DNA of 63,273 bases, the filler included, from Pelomyxa schiedti (lineage: Eukaryota; Protista; Evosea): assembly GCA_020536535.1 (NCBI GenBank). It is 6 parts of 6 records of this genome, joined end to end, with 100 filler letters (N's around TTAATTAATTAA, not from the genome) between each part and the next. Parts side by side here need not be neighbours in the genome. Positions count along the whole stretch, not along the records: positions 31,481 to 53,442 come from JAHLWZ010001068.1; 5 more parts are not named here. One strand, written 5' to 3'. Made by a program: the position numbers and the translations under genes. A model generated the notes under the pieces. It was given only the letters and a program-made list of their open reading frames with translations, did no database searches and was not told where the DNA came from. Below, piece by piece: positions 5,386 to 53,442 of this stretch; within the stretch, counting starts at the first letter, position 1, and every line of letters begins with the position of its first letter.

Positions 5386-7430
5386 ATGATGATGGATGCA
5401 CTTTTTGAGTTGCAAGTGGGGAACATCGACTCCGCCCTTTCTCTTGTTGCCAACGCATTCTCCCTTTTTGCAAGTGACACGATCAACAGTTTCAATCATG
5501 GTGTGCGTCTGCTCGTTACCATTTTATTTCTCATTTCTTTTGCTTTCCAACCCAACACAAAATAAAAGGTGAATCATCATCGCCACTGTCATCACATGAA
5601 GGTCAGTGTGAATACCTCCCTGCTCTGGTGTTCCTTGTTTGTCTCCGCTGCGTCATCAATGACCACGTGTCACTTCATCACCACATTCCACCGTGCCTGT
5701 CTACGGCTTTCTCCAGCGCCATCTCCTCCCCGACGGAGGTGATGAGTGCACACTGCATGCGTGTCTTGAATCGCATCAGCGCAACAGAAGTAATTGCGGA
5801 ATGGGCTGGCCTTGCGTCGACCGCCTCCTCGAGAGGCAATGTTGATCATCAACAACGATCGCCACACACAAACTCGGAACAGTCGTGGTCGTGCATGTAT
5901 TTTGTTGCCCTGTGGAGGTTGTATTGCTGCTCATCATCAACAGAAAACCGCGAAGGTTCATCTTCAGCAGCACACATTTTTGTTGAAATGAGCGACAAGA
6001 TGCCACAACCAGAATCACCATGTGCTGATGTACACGGCAGCAAATCCATGATCACTTGCTCTGTGGGGCAGATTCACTGGTGTGTTTCCTCTGTCACATC
6101 TCTGGGCCTCTGCTATGACTTCGGTGTTGGTGGTGTTGAGAAGGACATTCACAAGGCAGTGACACTGTACCAGAGGGCTGCTGATGCTGGCAGTGCTCGG
6201 GCAATGGGAAACCTTGGTTGGTGTTATGAACATGGCGAAGGTGTTCGCAAGGATATTCACATGGCGGTGACACTGTACCAGAGGGCTGCTGATACTGGCG
6301 ATGCCCACGCAGTGTACCACCTTGGTCGGTGTTATGACAGTGGTGGTGTTGAGAAGGACACTCACAAGGCAGCGGCACTGTACCAGAGGGCTGCTGATGC
6401 TGGTCATGCCACCGCGATGTTCAACCTTGGTTCGTGTTGTTACAGTGGTGATGGGATTGACAAGTACGTCAGCAGGGCCATTACACTGTGGCAGAGGGCC
6501 GCTGATGCTGGAAATTCCGATGCAATGTGCAACCTTGGTTGGTGTTATAAAAACGGTGATGGTGTTGACAAGGATGCTCACAAGGCAGTGACACTGTACC
6601 AGAGGGCTGCTGACACTGGCAGTGCCCATGGAACGTTCGCCCTTGGTTTGTGTTATTACAAAGGCACTGGCATTGAGAAGGACATCCACAAGGCAGTGAC
6701 ACTGTTCCAGAGGGCTGCTGATTCCGGGAGTGCCCAGGCACAGTGCAACCTTGGTTGGTGTTATTACAATGGTGATGGTGTTGAAAAGGACATCCACCAG
6801 GCAGTGGCACTGTACCAGAGGGCTGCTGATGCTGGAAATTCACAGGCAATGTTCAACCTTGGTTCGTGTTATGACTATGGGCATGGTGTTGAAAAGGACA
6901 TCCACAAGGCAGTGGCACTGTACCAGAGGGCCGCTGATGCCGGTTGTGCCAAGGCAGTGAACAGGCTTGGCGAGTGTTATAAAAACGGTAGTGGTGTTGA
7001 CAAGGATGCTCACAAGGCAGTGACACTGTGGCAGAGGGCTGCTGATGCTGGTCATGCCACCGCAATGTGCTACCTTGCTGAGTGCTATGACAATGGTGAT
7101 GGTGTTGAGAAGGACATTCACAAGGCGGTGACACTGTGGCAGAGGGCTGCTGATGCCGGCGATGCCTCCGCAATTTTCAACCTTGGTGTGTGCTATCAGC
7201 ATGGCGATGGTGTTGAAAAGGACACTCACAAGGCGGCGACACTGTGGCAGAGGGCCGCTGATGCCGGCAGTGACCAGGCAATGTACGCCCTCGCGCAGTG
7301 TCACCAACGAGGCATTGGTGGTTCAGCCAAGGACATACGTGAGGCAATGAGACTGTGGCTGGCTGCTGCTGACCTTGGTAACCTGGATGCAATGGACCAA
7401 CTTAGGAGGCTAAACAACAACAACACCTGA
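5386..7430 (+). CDS. SEL1-like repeat protein with 12 tandem repeats of about 36 aa (108 bp)
   Basis: Repeats of LGxCYxxGxGVEKDxHKAVTL(Y/W)QRAADAG from about 6100 to 7400. 5' exon structure is uncertain: an ATG at 5386 (MMMDALFELQ) is followed by a probable intron. Confidence 0.9.
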
Positions 7431-34772: not shown

Positions 34773-37700
34773 TCACAGCAGGTTCTTGGATCCAACCCGG
34801 CGGAGCTGTGGTGATGCTGTGGAAGCTGCACTTTTGACTGATGACCGGTTGATATCGTCAGTCAGCATCTTGAGGCTTGCAACAAGCTTGTTCAAGGCCT
34901 CAAAATCGGGGTGTTTCTTGATGGTGCTTTGAAGCATTTCCTGTGGGTTTTGTTATTTGGGCTGTTGATTTATTATTATTATTATTATTTTTACCTGGCA
35001 GAGGAGATAATACTCGGAAACTCGTTTCAGGGGGCTTGACAGGTGTATTTTGAGCACTATTTTGCTCAATTCTTCTGTTTCCTGTGCCGGTATTGAGTGA
35101 GATGGTTTAATGGTGCCTGAAAGTTACACACCGCAAGCCACTTGGAGTATTGGGGGTTTCCAATGTGTGCAGTTTCAAGTGTCCGCATCTGATCGGAGTG
35201 ATGTGATACATACTCAGAGTACAATGCAGATAGTTTAACAAGCTGTATAAGTTGAATTGGGTATGAAAAATCAAGTTAATACAGACTCTTGATTCAAAAA
35301 GATCGGTGATGGTGCCCTTTCCCTCCCAGTCCTTCTGCCGTTCCTGGATTTCCACAAGAAATCTGTACAATTGTTGAGGGCAGAGTGCGGAAAAGAAGTA
35401 CATACTGCTCATGCTCTGCTATGAGGGTTTCAAAGTTTAGTGTGACATTCTGGAGACCCTGTTCTTGCATCAGTGGACATGTATCTATTTTCAGAGATTC
35501 ACGCAGTGGAACAATGAAAGTCTTGCACAAAGTTAAAATTACGTGGAAGAGAAGGTGCAATTATAACCTTGAAGGTACTGGTAAGGATGGACACATATTG
35601 TGATTCAGTATCAATCAGCCGCTGTACCAGGGCGGCTCTCTTTTTCTCATTATCAGCCTCAAGTGCTTCCCAATACTTCTTGGAACCTTCCACATTCCCG
35701 GAAACCTTTTTTGGGTTAATTAAAAAGTAAACTGGCACTCGGAGCCTTACAGTGTTGTTGAACAAACTCTGCATAAGATTATTCTGTATCTCTTCTAGGA
35801 TTTTTCGAATTTCCTTGACCCAGACTTGTCTCTCTTCAGGTGTTTGAGCAACAAATTTCATAGTTCCTTCACTGCAAAGGAGTTTGAATTCATCTGAAGT
35901 TGACGACGATAAGGCCGTGGAAACAGGAGGGGAAGCTGTTGATGACGGCAGTAGCATTGGGGAAGATGTGGGACCGTCATCTGTTTGCAGAGAGGCTGCA
36001 GCAAGAAGGAATTTGCGTTGGAAGGTGTATTTGTTGCGTTTGAGATCTGGTTTTGTGATGAGAATCATGTCTGAGAAAAGCCAAACTCGGCTTTTTGTTC
36101 TGTTTACAGAAAGAACTCCTTCTTTGATGAACCTGATCGAAATTAGTTGGAAAGGGAGTTTTATGAGATGCTTGCACCTTCTTTTGGAGTTGGATGTCAG
36201 CCCACCTTCAAAGTTGGCCAATTTAGACTCTATTTCGTTTAACTCATTCATGTTGTCAGAGTCATGTTTGCGTTGGTTTATGTAGTCTGCCAGATCTCGC
36301 ATGAATTCTAAAGCATCTTGTAATGGCTGACAAGCAAAGAGTGTGCGGTTAGACTGGAGTAAAATGGTGGGAAGCTTACTTGGTTATCTGGGTGTTCTTT
36401 GGGGGTTGATTTGAGCATATCCGTCAGTAGCAGGACATCTGATAAGGTAAGATTTTTGTAATCGGTTCTTTTGGTAAGAGAATATTACATCTTGGCACTC
36501 TTTGGACGGGCCTGTGAATGATAAGTAACTGTTTAGATGGGTGGGGTGTATGCTAACGTGATCAACAAGCCTTCAACATTGAGGTTGTTCAATGCCGGGG
36601 TATATTCCAGCCTCTGTTTCATAAAATCGGGTGTCAAATTGGCTTTTCTCTCCTTCTATTGAAGACTGTGTACCTCCAAATATTGCCTAAAGGTTGGCGA
36701 CTTCTCTTTACATTGTGTCAGTGTGCTACAAGCGGTCTCGTGGTTGTTAACGTAGTATTTGTACAGTTTAATGAATGTGGTCTATGATGGTATGTATTTC
36801 CTGGGTTACATTTTTCGAAAAAAGGAAGTTATAGTGATACTCACATTGCTAAGAAAAACACTTCCAAGTACAGAAGAGTCCTGCCAGTTACTCAAGCAGT
36901 CCGAAATTGCCTGATGCAACCTGATGATAATAATTGTAAGTAAGCAAGTTGATACAACACATGTTTAGAGTTCATACTTAACATGACAGTTCTTTATGAC
37001 TTCAGTATTGGCAAACAGATGAAACACATCTTCTTTTACAAGTCCCTTCAGATCCGTCTTCATTGGGACAACGAAACTCTGGAAGTGAGTCAGAAAATTA
37101 AACACGGAAGTGAGACAGTTTGAGCAATTTTCACCTCCACGATGCCCACAAGAGACTTCAAGTAAGATGTTTCTGTCAAAAGCATCTCATTTGCAATTTG
37201 ATGCCGGCGCTTCAACATTGCAGGAAGTTTTTCAGAAACTTCTGGTGGTACTTTTGTTTTCCAGCTGTCATCTAATATGACAGGCGGTGGTGGTATAGGT
37301 GGTGGCTGAATATCTGTTGCTGCCAATGGAGATTTGATGTGCGTGCTTGAACGGGAAAGTCCATCCTTAACTCCAAGCAACGACATACGTTGCCGCGGGG
37401 AATTTGTACCTGCTGATGAGGCCCAGCCACTTGGTTTTCCTAATTTAGTATCAGTTGGTAAGTTCCCTTTTAAAAGCTGAGCATACGTTGTTGAAAAGCG
37501 GACTCGGTATTCTTTGAACTACTTTCCACAGGGGGTGGCTCAATCTCGCCGGGAGCCTCAATACTATCGGGAGGGGGAGTTATATCATCTGCTGGAAGTT
37601 CTATTTCCAAAGAAGAAGGTGACGGTGTTGGGTCCACAGGTGCATTCTTGGGGGAAAGAGACTCTGCCGCAGACTTGAGGTCTTCACGAGGAGGAAGAGC

Positions 37701-38281
37701 AGGAGGAACTGACTGGTCCCCTTCAAGTGGGGGTGATGGAGACTGCGAACTAGATGTAGAACGTGTCCGAACAAGTGTTTGCGTAGTAGTAGTATTAGTG
37801 AGTGAAGAACTAGAACTAGAGTCCTGTCCAGGAGGAGGAGGAAGTGTCATTGTTGGTGCAACATTTGGGGATCCGCAAGGCGAAGAACCGTGGGAAGACG
37901 ATGACGAGTGGTGCGATGAGTGGTGTGAAGAGTGTCCGCCCTTGGACGAGTGATGTGAGGAAGAGTGGTGCGTGGAAGAGTGGCTCCGCGGCGATGCCGC
38001 TTCGCCCGATTCTTTCCGCCTCTCCTTGTCGTGTTGCGGTGATGCCGTGTCCCTCTTTCTTTCTCCCCCAGGGCTTCCACCTCCTCCCGTCGTCGTAGTC
38101 GCTCCCGAGGGCGCCGCCTCCACCACTTCTCCTGTAGCTTAAGAACCACAACAACAAGTGAATAAGGGGAAAAAAAAAACCGCTGGAGTGCGCAATCTGT
38201 CGTTCGTATCGTACGTCGTTTGTGTCGCTGTTTTTGTGTCGTTGATTCGCACGAAATACCTCCTTCCTGTTGTTGCGACAT
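34773..38281 (-). CDS. Rho GEF with DH-PH-DH architecture and an S/H/P-rich N-terminus
   Basis: DH1: RRHQIANEMLLTETSYLKSL..PVQRVPR..LADYINQRK. PH: FIKEG..VWLFSDMILITK..ERQVWVKEI. DH2: KRAALVQRLIDTESQYVSIL..PLKRVSEY..HPDFEAL. Start MSQQQEG|GEVVE. Confidence 0.9.
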
Positions 38282-41694: not shown

Positions 41695-41917
41695 CTGATG
41701 CCTTTGTTGCTTGCTTTTTTTTTGTGTTGTGTGTGTTTGGTTTTCGCGAACCAAAGTTGCTTGCTGCGCTTTTTGCGATCTTTCATTTTAGCAAAACGAC
41801 CTTCTTGAAAATCCATTGATGTGTTTCCGCGACAGTTCTGGAAAACCTGCTTTTCGAAGAATAGATATCTATTGTACCATTGATTTGAAGCTCATAGAGA
41901 AAGAAAAAATACCTTTG

Positions 41918-44900
41918 TTAGTGATGCGTACTAGTAGTAGTGTCACTACCACCGTCGGTTTGTTCTGGTGGTTGTAGGACTCTGGGGCCATAGAGGAACC
42001 TCAATAGGCGTAGGAAATACTGTCTGAATGACTCCAGGTCAGTGGGGGAACAGTAGGATGAGTCGTGAGGAATTCCGGTTGAGAAGAATAGCTGAAGTGG
42101 CACAATGGGTGAAACTGTGTGTGCCGGTGCCGGTGTGTGTTGAGAATTTTGCTCCGGCTGTGATTTTGTGTGTGATTCCTGTGCCGGCGATGCTGTGGAT
42201 GATGGGGATTGTGTTCCGGGTGTAATTGTTGGTATTGTGTGGGGTGTAGTTAGGGATTCTATCTGTTGTATGGCATATTCCTTCCAGTCCTCAAATGGCA
42301 CCGGTATGCTCAGGTCCTCACAGCCCGCGACGTTGGTGCAGATTATGTTAACTATTTGTTGGAACGGGGCATAGTGCTGATGTACTGTGCAATCCACTTC
42401 TTGCGGGTCTTCTGTTGGCAAGAAATTCATGACCTGCAGTGCCCTCTGTACAATGGTACTGGCAAGGAAGTCAACAGGTATGAGGTTGAAATAGGAATTC
42501 GCTTTTGGGGCGCAACCAAGCTCTACTATACCCTTAATCAACAGTGTTAACCAATCAGTGTTATTGCAGGCCCCGGTCTCTGTACTCCATGAAACAAGTC
42601 CGGGTGAACAGGTTACAACGTGTAGACCTCTCTTGTGCGCTGCAGTGGCCATTGCATGAGCAACGGCTTTAGATTGGACATAACCAATGGTGGCCGCAAA
42701 GCTCCTGTATTTTGGTGAATCATAAGAATTATATTACACTCCCAACCTTAAATTCTCAATTTTCTCATCCATTTCATCTGCGGCACTTGTGGATACATGC
42801 ACAAAGCAACGGAGGTATTTAGTGGTTCCCGCAAGCTGAAGCATGGCTAAAGTTCCTAGTACATTTACTTCCCGCAGTAGGCTATAGGGTTCGATATGGT
42901 TGACTCTAGCACCTGCATGAATGATGAGTATGACCTTCTCAGTAATGCTGGTTAAGTCATCGGGAGAGATCCCCAAAGTGGGACCCAGATTTCCTCTAAT
43001 AACTTTGACTCGGCGTTGGATCAAATCACATATAGGACAATCCTTGCAAGTACATGCATTGACATCCACACAGTCACATTCACGTGAAAGGTGATACTGT
43101 GAGAGTGAGGCTTTAATCCTCTTATATCCGTCTTCTTTGCTGCTGCATCGAATAAGGCAGTAAATATCCATTTCGGTGCTTTGAAGTATATAAAAGAGAG
43201 TGTGGGCACCAAGAAACCCAGTGCCACCTGTTAAAAGTACTGCAGAGCCTGAGGGAAAATCCTGTTCATTCTCACCTTTGGGAGTATAGATGGGTAATTC
43301 ATTTAAAGCCTGTTGCAAGTCTTGTTGCATGAGCGTGAGGTTGTTGATAGGTAGGGACGGCGCCGAGTCGCCCACAGAAGACGAGTGGCTGGTGTCAGAG
43401 TCCATGGAGTACAGTGCTTGAATCGGGATAGTGGTGTGGTACTTTTCCTTCAGTTTGTTGATGATACGGAGAGCAGACATTGAGTCACCACCATGCTGAA
43501 TGAAAGCAGCTGGTATTAATTGAGAAGGCTTAATTTGGAAAACAAAAAAACCTCTGGCAGTCTTGAGATCCATGGGTTCTTCATTATTCTCGCAATTATT
43601 GTGTTTAGCCATGTTGACAGCCACAGATTCTCCCGCAGCTACTGCATTATTAACGGGCTCTCTATACTTTGCCTCTAAGGCACTCCGATTTATTCTGGAA
43701 GATGTCATATAACAGCAAACAGAACCTTACTTTGAATTTACTGTATTCAGCCCTTTCAAAATTTAGTGGGGTAGTCAAATTATTGGAATTATAACCATTT
43801 TCAGCAGTCCACACTGTATCATCAAGAACGATATTAAGTGGAATTTCAAATGGAGATAACCCACTTCTTTTCCCTACTTCAACTAAATCTTGTAAAACCT
43901 AAACGCAAATTAACTGGGAAAGTCGAGGAGGAAAATAAGATTACAATCGTTTTCGCTGCTGCAGATGCACAAAGAGCACCCAAACATTGTGTGGAGTCTT
44001 TCAAAGCAATTCGAAGGCTCTCTTCCCGTGGAATTACAACAGCAGTCTAAAATACTCTTAATTGTTTAGGAGGGGCTTGTGAAACAAACCGGGGTAGTTT
44101 GATGATACTTTGTTATATCAGCACAGGTGATGAAAATCTGTTTTACGTATGTGCTATTAGCAAGTGCACTTTCGACTTTGGCTGGTGATACAAACTCTCC
44201 CTGTAAACCATTATATGTTGGAGTTCATTTCAGATCAGAAGTTACCTGAGTCAGCTTAAATAAGGACTTCTTTCTGTCAATAATTTTGATTTGTGCTTGG
44301 CCAATAAGTGATACAATGTCGCTTGTATGGTACCATCCCTCTGAATCAAAGGCAGCCTCAGTGGCTTCTGGATTACCGACATAACCAGATGTCAAGCGGG
44401 GTGTCTTGATGAGTAGTTCACCACGAGGAAAAGGCACATCGGTGCTGCGGTATCCAAGCTCAGGACAGTCCAGGAGCTGAAGGAATCGTTAACAGAAGAA
44501 GGAATAGTGTAAATAACATACTTTCCATTTTACATCTGGATGAAATGACCCATCGTCAAAGCAAATTGATCCCGCTTCACTGCAGGCATAACCTTCATAC
44601 ACTAGGAAGCGTTAATTCACAAAGCGAGGCTCTATTAAGCAACCAAGTGCGTGGGGAAAACATTCCCTCAGGAATTCCTTCAAAGCTGGAGGGATAGGTG
44701 CCCCTCCAAGAACAAGACACCTAAATCTCTTCCCCACAACTTGTCGCAGTTGCTCCAGTATCTGTAAGGATTAGACTCCCACCAGAAATCAAATGAGAAA
44801 CCTTTTCCGATTGAAGGGCAAGGAACTGGGGTTTTGGCGAAGCACAGGTGGCCATAATCTCCCGCTTAGCCGCATAGAGAGCTTCTTTGTACTCAATGAA

Positions 44901-46387
44901 CAGAGGCTCCCAAACACGTGGAACAGTGGAAAGGTAAGATGGAGATAACACTGGTGCGTCATCAAAGACAGATGTAAGGGAGGGGCTAATTCCAATGCGG
45001 CCCCCATTTGTAAGGCACAGATAGATATTTTGAATATCTCCAATAAACATTTGTGACCCTGTATAGGTGGTCAATGGAAAAAAAGGAACACTAGGAGAAA
45101 TACCACAGAAGCTGACAAGGGGATCGTAGCCAAGGAATCCTTGAATTGAGTGTACAAGGTATTCTCTAACAGGGATACCCTTAGGCTCTCCCGTGCTTCC
45201 ACTGCTGTGAATAATGGCAACAGCATGTGGAGATTCCCATTCCACTCCAGTAATCAACCTTTCGAGCATTGAGTTGGCGTGAGCGTCACTGAAATCTCCC
45301 GGGATGAGGAACAGTGATTCAATGTTCAATGTAAGAAAAGATAACTGTCGTGATACAGATAACCGACTCAGAATGGTACAATGCTCATCATCTGCCACAA
45401 TTACGCGAATTTCACACGCCTGAATTATGGAAGAGACTTCTTCTTCACTCCAGGCTGGGAGAAAATAAGTAGACGCAGAAGGAATAAGAAAGGCGATGCA
45501 TACAACTATGCAGTGGTACATAAGTTGTACCACTCAGAAGAGTGGCAATCATTAATACCACACACTCTGCCCTAGAAGATGCCCATACACCTACAGTTTG
45601 GTGGTTCCCTCCAGTTGAAGGATTTGGGGGAAAACCCCTCACAGCTTCTGCTATCTTTGAACCGAGAATAATGGCAGCTGCCCTTACTTGTCTATATGAT
45701 TTCCAGACATAGGGCCTTGTATCATCAGCTGTTCCATTGCTTGGTACGCGCCAACCAAGGCACGGCCGATTGATAAACAAGTCCATAGCACAGCACAACA
45801 TAGACATGAGTGTCTTCTGAGCCACTACCATCCCCACAGCCGTTACCGTAGCATATCTCTCCTCTGACATGTAATGCGTTGGCTAGACATCAATACCAGT
45901 AAGATAAGTGCGATTCAATACCACTCACTCACACTGCCAAAAAAAAAAAAAGCTAACGAAAAACAGAAAAACCGAAACAAACGTAACGTTTCTTTAGAAA
46001 AAGGCAACCACGTTTTAAACGAGAACGAAAAAAGCTCATTCAGCATACCAAGTGATGGACTGCTGATGATTCGTCGACAGGCACGACCAACGGGGGGCCG
46101 CACAGCGGGCACAAGTCGAACCGACCCACGACGTCCCCGCTCCCCCCCATCATCGCACAATCGCACTCGGTGCAGTGGAACCTGGTGCCACCCGGCTCCA
46201 CTTTGGCCCCGCAGTTCCGACACACCACGGTCCGCATCACAATCCGCGGGTGTTGTTCTTGTTGTTGTTCCTGTGGTTCAGGTTGCGATTGAGGCTGTCG
46301 GTCGCCCCTGCTGCTCCCATTATCGTCGGTGGGCGACGCGGGGCTGGTGGAGGGGGCGTCGGTGGCATCCGACGTTGTAGCAGACAT
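41918..46387 (-). CDS. ZZ zinc finger fused to an NRPS-like adenylation-thiolation-reductase (carboxylic acid reductase-like) enzyme, multi-exon
   Basis: ZZ: CRNC..RFHCTEC..FDLCPLC..H(L|PT)H. A: WKSYRQV, HSSGSTGEPKG, GGAP, EGYACSEAG, KLLDCPELGYRSTDVPFPRGELLIKT, GWYHTSD, IDRKKSLFKLTQ|GEFVSP. T: FIQHGGDSMSA. R: LLTGGTGFLG, HAGARVNH..PYSLLREVNVLGT, GYVQSK. Confidence 0.92.
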
Positions 46388-46765
46388 TGTTTGGTTACTG
46401 GAAAAGAGTGATCACAGGCACACTTGCTGAAGTAAAGCCTGGACGGCCCAAGGACACAAGAGTGGGCCACTTATTTCAAGCTACTCCTCCAAGGGGAGAA
46501 GCGCCTCAATCTGTCAGGGCTATTTATAGTGAAGCTACTTTGTCAACCCCAGTCGGAAACTTTTCCGACTCTCGCTGAAAGCGGTGTGGGACAAGTAGGT
46601 CTGCATTTAAACCCTGCAGGTTAGGGTAAATCATTAAATTAAAAAACTTCGAAGTTAAAGAAGAAGGTAAACGAGCGAACGAACGACAAGCACAAAAAAA
46701 AATTTTTTTTCCTAACCAAATGACACACAGAGCGATAACGATTACAAACAACTTGTGCGTCCGAA

Positions 46766-48199
46766 ATGCAACAACAACAAGTAGCCGCGCACCGAATGGG
46801 AATTAAGGAACAGATGGAGCTGATACGAGCCTCTCCAAGCCACAAGAAGTTGTACTTTGACCAACTCGTCACGCCAGTGGCCCTGCTCACCCCAAATCCG
46901 GCCCTCACAGTCCACTCTCAGCCGCCATTGGAGAATAATCGCGAGGGGCCTGGACATGTTAGCCTGGAGTACAAACTCAACGAGGGTGTTGTTTTATACT
47001 CTGTGCATAAGTCACGGGTCAGGGAGTACTACTGCAGCGAGGACTGTGACAGGCACTCGTTCCTGGCGCTGAGACTCAGTGGCGAACAAGTGCTGATTTC
47101 TTCCCGGGGGGAGAATAAGACCCTCAGCAGCCTTGGGAAGTTGCTGAAACACAAGGACGGCACCCCTATTTCGGGGAGAACCAGCTTCTTTGTGAATGAG
47201 TCGAGGAAGCTGGGGTTGAGAGAGAACGGCANNNNNNNNNNNNNNNNNNNNNNNNNNNNNNNNNNNNNNNNNNNNNNNNNNNNNNNNNNNNNNNNNNNNN
47301 NNNNNNNNNNNNNNNNNNNNNNNNNNNNNNNGAGAATAAGACCCTCAGCAGCCTTGGGAAGTTGCTGAAACACAAGGACGGCACCCCTATTTCGGGGAGA
47401 ACCAGCTTCTTTGTGAATGAGTCGAGGAAGCTGGGGTTGAGAGAGAACGGCAGACAACCCACGTGCACTGAAGGTGAACTCATAATGAGGATTTTTGTGT
47501 GGGCTCCTGGCCGCCGGAATCCTATCAGGACTGCCTACTGCTTTGGTATGCATCGTTACTTTTGTTTCTCACGGACTTACACCCACGAAAGAAACCGATC
47601 CCGTGTTCCCTGCGCACTGGAAGGCCGATGACCAGTTGCGCGATGTGCAGCCCTCAATTCAGCATATAAATTGCCCTCCAAGTACTGAGTCTGAGGAAGT
47701 TGCACACGCACCGTCCCCAAAGCGTTCGTGCTCAGCAACAACTATTGCTAATTCTCATTCTGCTCGTGGATATGTTCCTGCAGCTTCGTCAGGGGTTCTC
47801 AAGAGAGAGGCGCAGCACAACAGTGTAAGGGCACTCACCAGGACCACAATAAAAACTCCAGCAGCTACAGAGGAATTTCGTGGGACATCCACAACAATTG
47901 CTTCCAAAACGACACACCTCCCACAGAAAAGGCCTCACCAACGGCAACAACCTCCTTCTCTTTATGCACGGCCAACTGAAGACTCTGTAACGAACCAGGG
48001 TGAAGTGAGGCTTGTTGTATCTCATTGTGGTCGCTCCACGGTGCCATCAGCTCAGTGCAGACCAATTAAAACAGAGCCGCCGAGGATTGTGACAATCGAC
48101 CTGAAAGACGGCAACATTGTCCACCCACACGCCACCCAGGTCATTATTATCAACATTCCAGCCTCATCAACACTCACACAACTCTATGTAAAATCTTAA
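46766..48199 (+). CDS. Hypothetical protein (globular N-terminal domain plus T/S/P-rich tail), split by an assembly gap
   Basis: Collapsing the duplicated ~120 bp around the 47232-47331 gap gives a continuous frame. A probable intron at about 47546-47591 joins it to the 47495-48199 ORF. Confidence 0.65.
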
Positions 48200-49422: not shown

Positions 49423-50769
49423 ATGGCCACTTTCAGCACCACACTCAACGACTCGGTACTGAACTTGACAGCAGTTGCCTGCTTCACCACCACGACGCGG
49501 GGCCAGATGGGCGCCCTGGCCGCTGCGGCCACGGTCGCGCGGTGCGGGGCGGGGAGCCCCATGGTGGCCGTCATGGGCCGCGGCCACGCCGCCTGGCTCG
49601 TCCGCTCCCTGTGGTCCGGCCTCGTCCGCCCCACCCTCCGCACCTTCGTCCTGCAGGTCTCCGGCACCTCGGCGCAGCCCAGCCCGCGCCCGCGCCCGCA
49701 GCGCCCGCGGGCCGCCCCCCCCGCCAGCGCCATCGTCTCCGTGTCCCTCTCCCCGCTGCTCCTCGGGGCCGGCCCCTCCGCGCCCTCGCTGCGCAGGCCC
49801 GACCCGCGGGCCGCCGCGTGGGTGGACTCCGGCCGCGTGGTGACGCGCACCCCATGGAGCGCGGGCGGGGCCGTCCTGCGCCTCTCCCCGGCGGCGGCGT
49901 GCGAGGGGGAGCGGGAGCCTGTGGTTGCGCCAGTGGGCAGGATACCGTGGGACACCCGTTTCAGGTTGGTGGCTGGGCCCAAGTGGGTGATGTACTTGAC
50001 GTTCAAGCAACCGGGCGATCCTGTCATGCTCAACGTCGTTCGGCTGAGCGGCCTTGCCAAGGGGTCTGGGACCCCCGGGTGCGTAGGCGGGTCTGTGTCT
50101 GTGGACATGCCGCAGCTTGTGGGAGCCGGCACAATCCACATGTTTTATGACCACTGTGCAGTTGACGGTGAGGTCATCATCACCATCTCCAGAGATAGCA
50201 ACACTGTGATTCTGGTTGTCGACGCGGAGCGAACCTATAACAGCAGGAGCCTGGCTTTGCTGAGCACAACCGCGTGCGGGTTCCCGGCCTGCTATGTGTT
50301 CTCGTCACTTGTTGTGATGAGGAGCTGGGGCAGGAGTCCTCCTGGTCGTTGTGGGTCACGCACATTCATTGTGAACACTCTGTTCTTGGGGACAGTTTAT
50401 GATGTGTATTGTGTTCAGGAAGGCACTGCAACTTCCACGCCAATCAGTAACCATGTGGTTGATGTGTTCCGTGTCTCTGACTCTCTGTTCTGTCTGTCAT
50501 TTGCCACAAACTACAAGCAAGAGTTGTTCAGTCTGTATGATGCCGACGACCCAACCCACCCACTTGACTTAATTCCCTCCATTGAAATGCACTTCAAGTC
50601 AAACAAAGTGCAGAAAGTCATGGCGCAGTCTGGGTTCATATTTGGTGTGTCAGGTAATGTAATTGATGTGATTGAGGCGAAAACTGGGTCTCTGTGCCTC
50701 ACCATCAGTTTCCCTGATTTCATCTCCATCAACCTTGCAAAACCACCCTTTTCCTGTTTTAGTTCCTAA
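49423..50769 (+). CDS. Family X intronless protein (copy 2)
   Basis: 448-aa ORF with TTRGQMGALAAAATVARCGAGS..GRGHAAWLVRSLWS, LSPLLL, SRTFIV, RVSDSLFC and GFIFGV..VIEAKTG..TISF. Confidence 0.9.
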   Translation: MATFSTTLNDSVLNLTAVACFTTTTRGQMGALAAAATVARCGAGSPMVAVMGRGHAAWLVRSLWSGLVRPTLRTFVLQVSGTSAQPSPRPRPQRPRAAPPASAIVSVSLSPLLLGAGPSAPSLRRPDPRAAAWVDSGRVVTRTPWSAGGAVLRLSPAAACEGEREPVVAPVGRIPWDTRFRLVAGPKWVMYLTFKQPGDPVMLNVVRLSGLAKGSGTPGCVGGSVSVDMPQLVGAGTIHMFYDHCAVDGEVIITISRDSNTVILVVDAERTYNSRSLALLSTTACGFPACYVFSSLVVMRSWGRSPPGRCGSRTFIVNTLFLGTVYDVYCVQEGTATSTPISNHVVDVFRVSDSLFCLSFATNYKQELFSLYDADDPTHPLDLIPSIEMHFKSNKVQKVMAQSGFIFGVSGNVIDVIEAKTGSLCLTISFPDFISINLAKPPFSCFSS

Positions 50770-50997: not shown

Positions 50998-52344
50998 TCA
51001 AGATGAGAATGGTGTTGCAATGAGGTCGACAGATTTTGCTTTCAAACCAGTGAAGCTTATGGTGACGCACAGAAACCCAGTTAAGGGCTCAATCACATCA
51101 ATCAAGTTGCCAAACACACCAAAAATAAAGCCAGAATTTGCCATGAGCTTCTTCGCTTTGATTCCCTTGTGTGATTTGGTGTTGGTGTGATGTGTGTCAC
51201 TGGTTGACTGAGCAACATCAAGTGGCTGGATTGGATTGTCACGGTGAAACAGATTGATCTGTGGGTGTTTTTTGCAGAATGACACACAGAACCAGGTATC
51301 TGACACACGGAACACACCAACCACGGTTTTAAGCATGACAGGCGTTGGAATTGCGGTGCCTTCCTGCACATGGAATGCTTGAAAAAGAGAATTCCATAAC
51401 AGAGTCTGCACAATGAAAGTGCGTGATCCAAAAGCTGGAGAACAGTGATCCCAGTTCCTCATCACAACCAGAGAAACAAATGAGCGCCCAAGTGCAAATT
51501 CACACGTGGTTGTGCTCAACACAACCAGGCTCTTGCTGTTGTGTGTCTTCTCCACATCGACAACCAGGATCACAGTCCTGTTTTCCTTGGAATGAGTGAC
51601 AATGACCTCACTGTCTACCGACTGGTCGGGATACACCCCAACCATACCCTTGCCAGCAAGTTGTGGAACCTCCACAACAACAGAGCCGGGTCCGAGGCAC
51701 TCGTCCTCACCGCAATCCAGCACAGAGAACCCACCATTCAGCGGCGTCACAGTCAAAGTCACCATGCGGTCGCAGCCTTTTGTCCAGGGCCGTTCCCCCC
51801 TGCCAGGCCCAGCAACCGTGGCCCACCTTGCCCCAATCACGTAGCAATCCCAGGGGCTCACCGCCACAGGCACCGCGGTGCTGGGATCCGCAGGCAGGCC
51901 CTGCACAACAAGCACTGCGCCGCCGCCCATGGCGCGTGTCGCCCAACCTGTGACGGTGCTGGGGCCCACCCTCGTCGCCCCGCGCGGGGTGTCGGGTCCG
52001 AGACCCGGCGCGGAGGCTACTCCGAGGAGCAAAGGGGACACGACGACGGAGAGAGACAGGGCCACGTGGCTGACGAGGCCCTTGTCGACGAGCAGAGTGC
52101 CCCGCACCTCCAGGGCCAAGGCGCGGAGGGTGGGGCGGACGAGGTCGGACCACAGGGAGCGGACGAGCCAGGCGGCGTGGCCGCGGCCCATGACGGCAAC
52201 CATGGGGCTCCCCGCCCCGCACCGCGCGACCGTGGCCGCAGCGGCCAGGGCGCCGAGCTGGTCGCGCGTGGTGGTGGTGCAGGCAAATGATATGCCGATT
52301 TCTTCGTCGCTGTATGTAGTCGCGGTGCTTGTGAATGTTGCCAT
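50998..52344 (-). CDS. Family X intronless protein (copy 3), convergent with copy 2
   Basis: 448-aa ORF with the same motif order. N-terminal cassette nearly identical to copy 2. Confidence 0.9.
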   Translation of the reverse strand: MATFTSTATTYSDEEIGISFACTTTTRDQLGALAAAATVARCGAGSPMVAVMGRGHAAWLVRSLWSDLVRPTLRALALEVRGTLLVDKGLVSHVALSLSVVVSPLLLGVASAPGLGPDTPRGATRVGPSTVTGWATRAMGGGAVLVVQGLPADPSTAVPVAVSPWDCYVIGARWATVAGPGRGERPWTKGCDRMVTLTVTPLNGGFSVLDCGEDECLGPGSVVVEVPQLAGKGMVGVYPDQSVDSEVIVTHSKENRTVILVVDVEKTHNSKSLVVLSTTTCEFALGRSFVSLVVMRNWDHCSPAFGSRTFIVQTLLWNSLFQAFHVQEGTAIPTPVMLKTVVGVFRVSDTWFCVSFCKKHPQINLFHRDNPIQPLDVAQSTSDTHHTNTKSHKGIKAKKLMANSGFIFGVFGNLIDVIEPLTGFLCVTISFTGLKAKSVDLIATPFSS

Positions 52345-52501: not shown

Positions 52502-53442
52502 GTGTGGCAAACGGGCTTAGATTTTCTATCCAAATATTTAGCTCACCTCGCCACAGCTGGCACACAACACGAAACGGTAGTACTTGGGGATAACTGTCTG
52601 AGTGGGATCTGTGCCGGGCTGGAAATGGTTACGTCTCTTGGGCTTGGCGACTACGGCCGTGTCTACCACTCCTGCCTGGATCTCCTCTCGTCGTCGTCGT
52701 CTAGACGTGTCACCGCCACGACCACCATCCTCGAGGATGATGGCACCGTGGGAGGCGTTGCTGTAAGCGCACCACAACCGCCACAACAACCCACAAGTGG
52801 ATCTGGGCGGCACCACCGCCGGCGGTTCGATTTGAATGGCCTCCTGGCGTCAACAATTGACCCACTCAACACATATGTTGATGGTGATGGTGATGGTGAT
52901 GGTGATGGTGATGGTGGCAACGACGGGGGGGTGCACTGTGACTGCGGCGAACTTGGTGGAGGGGGAGGGAAGTGGAGGGCACTGGCACTGTTGGTGCTGA
53001 GGAGTGTTTACAGCTGGAAGCCATCGCTGTTCAAGGAGTACAGGCCCCACCTCGTGTTCCCACCTGAGGGTTTGAGGATCGCCGCGAAGAGTTGTTCCAT
53101 GGAATCTCTGCGGATTCTAAAAGAAGTGCTGGATACGGCTTGTTTGAACAAGCCCAGGCCTGATGCGGATACTGCTGCTATGTCACAAGAAGAAAAACGG
53201 AAGTACGAGGAGGAAAAGGCCATGTGGTGTGCTGGAACGTTCCTCAGAAATGTGTGTTTGTTCCACGGCATCGGAACACCTGAGAACAAGAGGGGTGCAT
53301 TACTCCTGGATTTGGAGTGTGAGCCTTATGGGTTCGGACCGTCCCTTTTTGACATTGGATGGTTCTATGAAGGAGGGCAAAGCGGGGTTGAGAGGGACTT
53401 GGCCAAGGCCTTCCAGTACTATCTGTCTGCTGCTGAGAGGGG
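52502..53442 (+). CDS. SEL1-like repeat protein, 3'-truncated by contig end
   Basis: LFHGIGTPENKRGA and LFDIGWFYEGGQSGVERDLAKAFQYYLSAAERG, plus a (GD)n tract. Start uncertain. Confidence 0.75.

Follow-up and report, generated by a model that had tools for sequence, protein, structure and literature searches.

A transcribed Pelomyxa schiedti gene that probably joins a ZZ-type zinc finger to a carboxylic-acid-reductase-like enzyme

Introduction

Can a eukaryotic gene place a ZZ-type zinc finger in front of the catalytic machinery of a carboxylic acid reductase (CAR)? This question was raised by a locus in a window of 63,273 nucleotides (the whole stretch of DNA analysed here, filler included) from the Pelomyxa schiedti assembly GCA_020536535.1. 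CARs are valued biocatalysts; to our knowledge, the known ones come from bacteria and fungi, and those that have been characterised all begin directly with the adenylation (A) domain. Our analysis indicates that the locus is probably a transcribed gene of 12 exons encoding a ZZ-type finger, an A domain of the ACSL/CAR type, a carrier (T) domain and a thioester reductase (R) domain of the short-chain dehydrogenase/reductase (SDR) type. An earlier, sequence-only reading of the window had proposed a ZZ-type finger in frame with a CAR-like A-T-R enzyme whose carrier serine and SDR motifs were intact, and this part of it was borne out.

Gene structure and transcription

The gene occupies positions 46387-41918 on the minus strand, where six-frame open reading frames (ORFs) and a three-frame read gave open segments that could be chained from one end to the other. 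Exon junctions were placed by hand on the sequence, and frame, splice sites and stops were then checked by script, giving 12 coding exons with a total of 3873 nt, 1290 codons and zero internal stops. All 11 coding introns are of the GT-AG type and measure, from 5' to 3', 166, 49, 40, 42, 45, 45, 43, 46, 43, 36 and 42 nt; a value of 7.4 introns per gene has been given for P. schiedti (PMC8887013). Homology searches, family scans and the fold model used single exons, and the joined reading entered the frame and stop check and the merged rows of the alignments. The strings quoted in the sequence-only reading were all found on the minus strand with correct coordinates and motifs, and the intron that it had placed at 45883-46048 is a canonical GT...AG intron of phase 0 and 166 nt. 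The features of the gene are listed below; P0009 is a second P. schiedti protein, deposited at NCBI as 'ATP/NADPH-dependent carboxylic acid reductase [Pelomyxa schiedti]'.

Exon 1, 46049-46387, minus strand: 339 nt, phase 0, GC 0.63; low-complexity N-terminus, then the ZZ-type finger (ORF and sequence).
Finger in exon 1, 46222-46100, minus strand: CRNC...CTEC...(12-residue insert)...RFDLCPLC...HHL.
Intron 1, 45883-46048, minus strand: GTATGC...TCTAG; cuts the finger between HHL and PTH.
Exon 2, 45504-45882, minus strand: final His of the finger (PTHY), linker and A-domain start NRPCLGWR (tblastn to P0009).
Intron 2, 45455-45503, minus strand: splicing seen in RNA.
Exon 3, 44802-45454, minus strand: A-domain core with the P-loop HSSGSTGEPKG at about 45206-45177 (Pfam AMP-binding 1.9e-12).
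Exon 4, 44644-44761, minus strand: A domain, LVLGGAPIPPALKEFL; both neighbouring introns (40 and 42 nt) are predictions.
Exon 5, 44522-44601, minus strand: A5 motif EGYACSEAGS, with YACSE at 44590-44576.
Junction of exons 5 and 6, minus strand: spanned by K/LLDCPELGYRSTDVPFPRGELLIKT.
Exon 6, 44246-44476, minus strand: LLDCPELGY...PRGELLIKT, A7 motif WYHTSD (HTSD at 44332-44318) and A8 motif IDRKKSLFKLTQ (NCBIfam carboxyl_red 1.2e-24).
Intron 6, 44201-44245, minus strand: splicing seen in RNA.
Exon 7, 44090-44200, minus strand: GEFVSP..., C-terminal subdomain of the A domain.
Intron 7, 44047-44089, minus strand: splicing seen in RNA.
Exon 8, 43945-44046, minus strand.
Exon 9, 43796-43898, minus strand: ends ...PFEIPLNIVLDDTVWTAEN-G; its donor at 43795 is used in RNA.
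Intron 9, 43753-43795, minus strand: 43 nt, donor and acceptor confirmed in RNA.
Exon 10, 43731-43752, minus strand: 22-nt micro-exon, (G)LNTVNS(K), with the codon of the A10 catalytic Lys split AA/A.
Intron 10, 43695-43730, minus strand: 36 nt, GTAAGG...TTCCAG, phase 2 within the Lys codon; retained in RNA contigs.
Exon 11, 42747-43694, minus strand: A10 tail (K)INRSALEAKY, carrier GGDS at 43492-43481, first two thirds of the reductase and TGGTGFLG at 43231-43208 (Pfam PP-binding 5.5e-5 and NAD_binding_4 7.8e-36; TIGR01746 1.6e-31).
Intron 11, 42705-42746, minus strand: splicing seen in RNA.
Exon 12, 41918-42704, minus strand: rest of the reductase (Pfam NAD_binding_4 3.7e-7), YVQSK at 42682-42668, a low-complexity stretch, a conserved C-terminus, LQLFFSTGIP...FLRLLRFL, and TAA at 41920-41918 as the stop.
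Intron of the 3' untranslated region (UTR), 41847-41912, minus strand: 66 nt, beginning 6 nt past the stop codon (RNA contig).

The RNA and DNA contigs came from a single study, in which the locus was found in two runs of DNA and two of single-cell RNA, the RNA runs being labelled 'protist metagenome'; a 2023 study applied single-cell transcriptomics to a P. schiedti consortium (PMC10579272). Five coding introns (45455-45503, 44201-44245, 44047-44089, 43753-43795 and 42705-42746) were spliced out in the RNA contigs, and introns 1, 3, 4, 5, 8 and 10 are predictions made from splice signals, frame and comparison. Exon 3 was contiguous in RNA across 44857-45454, so the unusual insert of 7 residues close to motif A4 is genuine. 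One RNA contig departed from the genome at 41911, its loose end resembling 41846-41817, and this continuation accounts for the intron assigned to the 3' UTR. In the RNA exon beyond that intron about 6 of 30 letters differed from the window, while the coding part was nearly identical, which suggests a second allele or copy.

Regarding base composition, the GC content of exon 1 (0.63) stood apart from that of the remaining exons (0.32-0.50), and the 5' parts of the neighbouring ORFs were GC-rich as well; genes in this genome may have a 5' GC bias.

Enzyme domains

When the exon ORFs were scanned against Pfam, AMP-binding (in several pieces), PP-binding and NAD_binding_4 were detected, and the best NCBIfam families were carboxyl_red (NF041592) for the A-domain exons and Thioester-redct for the R exons. 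The A-domain motifs HSSGSTGEPKG, EGYACSEAGS, GWYHTSD, IDRKKSLFKLTQGEF and ENGLNTVNSKINR were all present, the A10 Lys of the last depending on removal of the predicted 36-nt intron. The carrier domain was recognised by PP-binding, with its GGDS aligned with the GGDS of all relatives, and the SDR-type reductase was recognised by TGGTGFLG and YVQSK together with the two NAD_binding_4 matches given above and TIGR01746 matches of 1.6e-31 and 2e-18. Three of the A motifs were altered (T>S, G>A/T>S and G>S). The sequence-only reading had seen in these deviations a hint of an altered substrate; they are conservative swaps that form part of a general acceleration over the A and R domains (10 of 77 family-invariant positions changed); this is not specific evidence for a new substrate.

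A Cys-rich insert, ECDCVDVNACTCKDCPIC, was located at 43081-43028 (minus strand) in the reductase, with the NADPH-binding part on one side and the HAGARVNH strand on the other. No aligned relative has this insert, which might be a metal binder.

Micro-exon and the A10 lysine

The coding of the A10 motif depends on how the region after exon 9 is spliced. Reading the 22-nt micro-exon and removing the 36-nt intron (43730-43695) gave ENGLNTVNSKINR, collinear with ENGLLTSSNKINR of P0009, and across the micro-exon ENGLNTVNSKINRSALEAKYREPV was residue-for-residue collinear with ENGLLTSSNKINRLAIERKYRDRV of the Pelomyxa protein. The gene of P0009, situated on contig JAHLWZ010000929.1 (L001) of the same assembly, has an annotated 39-nt intron in the same place, in phase 2 within the Lys codon (L001 8632-8670). 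The micro-exon reading and the shared intron position indicate that the A10 lysine is encoded. As a lesson for annotation, introns of 36-49 nt and a 22-nt micro-exon can conceal a catalytic lysine.

Two other solutions were considered and rejected. A single 70-nt intron (43726-43795) after ...TAENG keeps the frame and yields TSSRINR, which loses the invariant A10 Lys found in the T.S.K..R of all relatives; it was ruled out by the RNA acceptor at 43753, 27 nt earlier, by the collinearity of the micro-exon reading and by the Pelomyxa intron at the same position. A genetic code with TAA as a sense codon was considered for the in-frame TAA found in RNA (see below) and for the intron right past the stop. 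It was ruled out by two neighbouring paralogous ORFs that end in the same ...FSS, followed by TAA in the one and by TGA in the other, and by the 1290 codons, which contain 0 TAA and 0 TAG.

The ZZ finger and its predicted junction with the A domain

The eight zinc ligands of the finger are ordered CRNC, CTEC, CPLC and H-LPT-H over the splice between exons 1 and 2. All five family-invariant Cys columns are preserved in the finger, and exon 1 was aligned with the finger profile of its relatives by hhalign (95.8%, E 6.6e-9), with the 12-residue insert falling past the second CxxC. Among the relatives, the fingers of 6 of 8 reached Pfam ZZ (best 2.9e-10), and the family finger profile matched the solved ZZ domains of Nbr1, CBP, p300, HERC2, p62 and KCMF1 with E values from 5e-13 to 2e-8, and also that of BIG. 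The window finger is the most deviant of the family.

Exon 2 opens with PTHY, which aligned to PEHW, the final His of the finger in P0009, and an in-frame stop lies immediately upstream, so exon 2 cannot be extended in that direction. A variant DNA contig over 45939-46500 differed from the window by 4 substitutions and 22 indel letters; its indels in exon 1 (at 46063 and 46077) were of 3 nt, and those in the proposed intron 1 (at 46026 and 45965) were of 1 nt and 15 nt, the pattern expected of coding versus non-coding DNA. Splice signals, the kept frame, this indel pattern and the collinear relatives lend the predicted splice between the ZZ and A exons indirect support. The best DNA run has 45939-46500 as the variant contig alone, which parts from the main contig where intron 1 has a poly(T/A) tract; either two haplotypes or copies exist over this stretch or the assembly is unstable there.

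Relatives and phylogeny

No close orthologue emerged when proteins were searched exhaustively by HMMER with the T-R exon; hybrids of polyketide synthase and non-ribosomal peptide synthetase (PKS-NRPS) gave the best matches, at 32% identity, and P0009 (1119 residues) appeared at rank 9. P0009 carries Pfam ZZ (2.6e-8), AMP-binding, PP-binding and NAD_binding_4. A word search with this protein returned P0151 and P0145 (Logan assemblies) and P0154 (Rotaria magnacalcarata, UniRef 'long-chain-fatty-acid--CoA ligase'), for all of which ZZ, A, T and R are precomputed. It also returned P0112 (Protostelium nocturnum) and P0152 (Physarum polycephalum, an N-truncated transcript), several unnamed ENA, JGI and Logan proteins and then hundreds of bacterial CARs. 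A ZZ-like motif was present in 19 proteins of the comparison set, including those of Protostelium and Rotaria, and in the alignment C..C...R[FY].C..C...D[LI]C..C...H..H stood ahead of NRPCLG in all complete non-bacterial relatives except P0168. In public databases, a dozen or more clusters at 90% identity contain the fusion; their members come from Pelomyxa, Protostelium, Rotaria and unnamed eukaryotes. Judged by their sequences, these proteins constitute a small eukaryotic family (Amoebozoa, bdelloid rotifers and environmental eukaryotes) with an N-terminal ZZ as the rule.

The sequence-only reading had called the architecture one that it did not recognise, and this did not hold, since ZZ with AMP-binding, PP-binding and NAD_binding_4 is precomputed for proteins of P. 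schiedti, Rotaria magnacalcarata and Logan assemblies. That reading had also named as a ground for dismissal that the architecture be already common in databases; public proteins do carry it, but the family is small, and the literature search found no paper on ZZ together with a CAR or thioester reductase, nor a relevant one on CAR in Amoebozoa. The architecture is not new as sequence, and the window gene is one more, rather aberrant, member of the family. Compared with the characterised CARs, the ZZ-bearing CAR is an undescribed variant.

A maximum-likelihood tree was built from the columns of the large T-R exon, with 32 rows and with A-T-R modules of PKS-NRPS hybrids as the root. In this tree, the window gene was the sister of P0009 with a support of 100/100, the bacterial CARs formed one separate clade (100/100), and the ZZ-bearing proteins fell outside it, with the backbone and root poorly resolved. 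The window gene is a fast-evolving paralogue of P0009. Recent horizontal transfer from actinobacteria, which the sequence-only reading had wished to check by phylogeny, was unsupported, as the sister is a Pelomyxa protein and the bacteria lie in their own clade. The close likeness to actinobacterial CARs that it had described stands at the level of the family (about 30% identity) and fails as close kinship, the nearest protein being the Pelomyxa paralogue.

The public model of P0009 jumps at L001 about 7000-7100 from ...ILAIIYT to RKFELEH..., with the P-loop absent, and ...TASSGSTGVPKGTIITD... can be read in a different frame of the DNA that it skips. The P-loop exon therefore seems to be missing from the public model.

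Alternative explanations

Several observations weigh against reading the locus as an intact gene for a ZZ-bearing, CAR-like enzyme. Regarding the finger, exon 1 alone had neither a Pfam ZZ match (E<=0.1) nor a match to a solved ZZ (E<=10), which is due to the 12-residue insert and to the last His being located in exon 2; the AlphaFold2 model of the exon-1 finger had a mediocre pLDDT of 65, and the p300 and p62 ZZ domains were among its top Foldseek matches, with a root-mean-square deviation of 1.2-4.2 Å over 46 columns but at non-significant E values (E >= 0.85). Regarding the enzyme, the exons taken singly (28.6, 86.1 and 71.9 bits) missed the 1300-bit equivalog cut-off of NF041592, the full-length relative P0154 scored 496 bits against the same cut-off, and the literature search found no assay of any ZZ-bearing family member. 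On these scores, the gene belongs to a CAR-like family and is no equivalog of the bacterial CAR. In the transcripts, RNA contigs covering 45727-46500, a span that includes exon 1 and intron 1, were sought and none was found, both RNA contigs over 43695-43730 kept the 36-nt intron, which brings in an in-frame TAA at 43729-43727, and RNA contig 3 of run X3 lacked one base at 42652 in the reductase exon, a base that both DNA runs have. Finally, the end branch of the window gene measured 1.42, compared with 0.39 for P0009, and 10 of 77 family-invariant positions were changed in it, compared with 0-6 in each relative left out in turn (positions defined from 13 relatives, with two alignment artefacts removed from the window count); the changed sites were spread across the A, T and R domains.

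The retained intron with its stop, the lost base, a number of altered invariant positions exceeding that of every relative, an end branch 3.6 times that of the sister and a finger that, with its insert, falls below Pfam ZZ could all be signs of a paralogue that is decaying or non-productive, an incipient pseudogene that is transcribed but whose mis-spliced or frameshifted messages end early and whose enzyme is unmade or inactive. We regard this as unlikely, given that 1290 codons remain open across 12 exons with every splice site canonical, most substitutions at the invariant sites are conservative ones (T>S, G>A, G>S, L>M and D>N), the P-loop, A5, A7, A8, A10 Lys, GGDS, TGxTGFLG and YxxxK are all kept, and the frame of exon 1 is intact in the variant allele. 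In addition, unspliced intermediates are common in amplified single-cell RNA libraries, each junction or event comes from one low-depth contig, and the 1-nt deletion is not present in the two DNA runs; we take the retained intron and the missing base as unspliced or erroneous molecules. That the ZZ exon is part of a different gene, or that misassembly attached it to the reductase gene, is highly improbable. The Logan DNA contigs do break at the poly(T) tract in intron 1 (45939-45947), the contig bearing exon 1 is the variant one with its 4 substitutions and 22 indel letters, exon 1 is far richer in GC than the rest of the gene, and no RNA contig spans the junction. However, exon 2, which lies on the main contig, has the last finger His and the linker at its start (PTHY...) and so needs an upstream CxxC exon, the stop right before it leaves no protein start with the finger tail alone, the finger has the same place and spacing ahead of NRPCLG in all relatives, and neighbouring ORFs also show GC-rich 5' exons.

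As for the function of the finger, the sequence-only reading had suggested that it reads a free protein N-terminus in the manner of p62 or p300, targeting reduction to proteins or providing N-degron-like regulation. Profile comparison shows the finger of the family to be a true ZZ, the ZZ has been kept at the N-terminus across Amoebozoa and rotifers and hence is under selection, and its solved relatives include the ligand-binding ZZ domains of Nbr1, p62, HERC2 and KCMF1. In the ZZ domains of p62 and p300, an acidic pair, D-x-D, past the second CxxC cages the amino group of the ligand. The family consensus at this place is N-Y-D, in contrast to D-x-D, and the window has R-F-D behind the 12-residue insert and an R in the first CxxC, so that by this comparison the window finger is the one in the family least likely to bind N-termini as p62 does. 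Such a reader function is, in our opinion, quite improbable. A broader proposal, which we offer as a very long shot, is that ZZ-bearing CARs are a eukaryote-specific class of reductases dependent on a carrier protein, in which the finger would link the making of the aldehyde to a partner protein; it might, for example, dock on a particular protein N-terminus or on an enzyme acting downstream. In the fast-evolving window copy, retention of the 36-nt intron would then be regulated and would decide whether a truncated ZZ-A protein or the complete reductase is made. If true, this would be the first link of a ZZ reader module with thiotemplate chemistry.

Neighbouring features

Other features were identified on both sides of the gene.

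35499-38126, minus strand: multi-exon gene with a PH domain of the SOS1/NGEF type (Pfam 1.6e-7), a Ser/His-rich and GC-rich 5' exon and a DH-like TETSYLKSL; probably a RhoGEF, judging from these domains.
46766-47368 and 47362-47631: ORFs with the same coding-like text, ...LLKHKDGTPISGRTSFFVNESRKLGLRENG, on both sides of a run of 100 N at 47232-47331, which looks like a scaffold gap with duplicated edges.
49423-50769, plus strand, and 50998-52344, minus strand: convergent single-exon ORFs of 448 aa each, 47% identical (E 2e-99).
52502-53440, plus strand: ORF with a terminal Sel1 repeat (Pfam 9.1e-8) that runs past the edge of its piece.

The two convergent ORFs, the paralogous pair with the ...FSS ends described above, had no Pfam family and no exact match in the protein collection; GC content is very high in the N-terminal half of each (up to 0.67), and a stretch of 40 residues, GALAAAATVARCGAGSPMVAVMGRGHAAWLVRSLWS, is identical between these halves.

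Proposed mechanism and significance

For the preferred reading, in which the locus is a transcribed gene with finger, A, T and R domains, the mechanism is most likely that of the bacterial CARs, on which it is modelled here and for whose cycle the sequence features are all present. The A domain would use ATP to convert a carboxylic acid, probably a fatty-acid-like one to judge from its ACSL/CAR likeness, into an acyl-adenylate, and would pass the acyl group to the phosphopantetheine thiol on the serine of GGDS. The R domain would then reduce the thioester with NADPH and release the aldehyde. The finger would sit where bacterial CARs have their N-terminal helical extension, and its most likely role would be that of a zinc-stabilised protein-contact module for partner docking, oligomerisation or regulation, outside catalysis.

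A small eukaryotic lineage, comprising Amoebozoa, bdelloid rotifers and environmental protists, consistently puts a ZZ before the A-T-R machinery. For enzymology, this raises the question of the role that a protein-contact zinc finger plays on a thiotemplate reductase, with a natural set of sequences at hand.

Comparison with known systems

The closest known system is P0009 of P. schiedti, which shows the same order of ZZ, A, T and R and the same conserved C-terminal tail, with an identity of 44% to the window protein in the A core and of 39% over the T-R columns. The contig of P0009 has a GC content of 0.44 and introns of about 35-57 nt, both like the window, and the two genes have in common the phase-2 intron in the A10 Lys codon. 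In contrast to P0009, the window copy has a 50-residue low-complexity leader, the 12-residue insert in the finger, the 7-residue insert near A4, the Cys-rich insert in the reductase, an additional intron that makes the 22-nt micro-exon, and a far longer branch.

Likewise, the ZZ domains of p62/SQSTM1, CBP/p300, HERC2, Nbr1 and KCMF1 (PF00569) have the same CxxC...CxxC...CxxC...H...H pattern, whereas their known contexts are scaffold, ubiquitin-ligase and acetyltransferase proteins, and the ZZ is here placed on a metabolic enzyme. The window finger also differs from them in its insert, in an HxxxH split by an intron and in having no significant match alone. Lys2, the fungal alpha-aminoadipate reductase, and the NRPS-like A-T-R reductases (TIGR03443) follow the same A-T-R logic with a reductase of the TIGR01746 type, and the requirement for a phosphopantetheinyl transferase is in common with Lys2-type systems. 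The A domain of Lys2 is of the NRPS amino-acid type, whereas that of the window gene is of the ACSL/CAR type; TIGR03443 matched the T-R exons only, and Lys2 has no ZZ.

Finally, the bacterial CAR/FadD9 proteins of Nocardia, Mycobacterium and Streptomyces (NF041592) have the same A-T-R order, an ACSL-like A domain with PRGELL, GEF and ENGLLT..K..R, GGDS in the carrier domain, and TGxTGFLG plus YxxxK in the R domain, as in the window gene. CARs conserve lysines of the C-terminal subdomain that are needed for the two half-reactions (PMC5396282), and these are likewise conserved in the window gene. At about 30% identity, the bacterial proteins bear a helical N-terminal extension and no ZZ, whereas the window gene is eukaryotic, carries a ZZ-type finger in that place and is interrupted by 11 coding introns.

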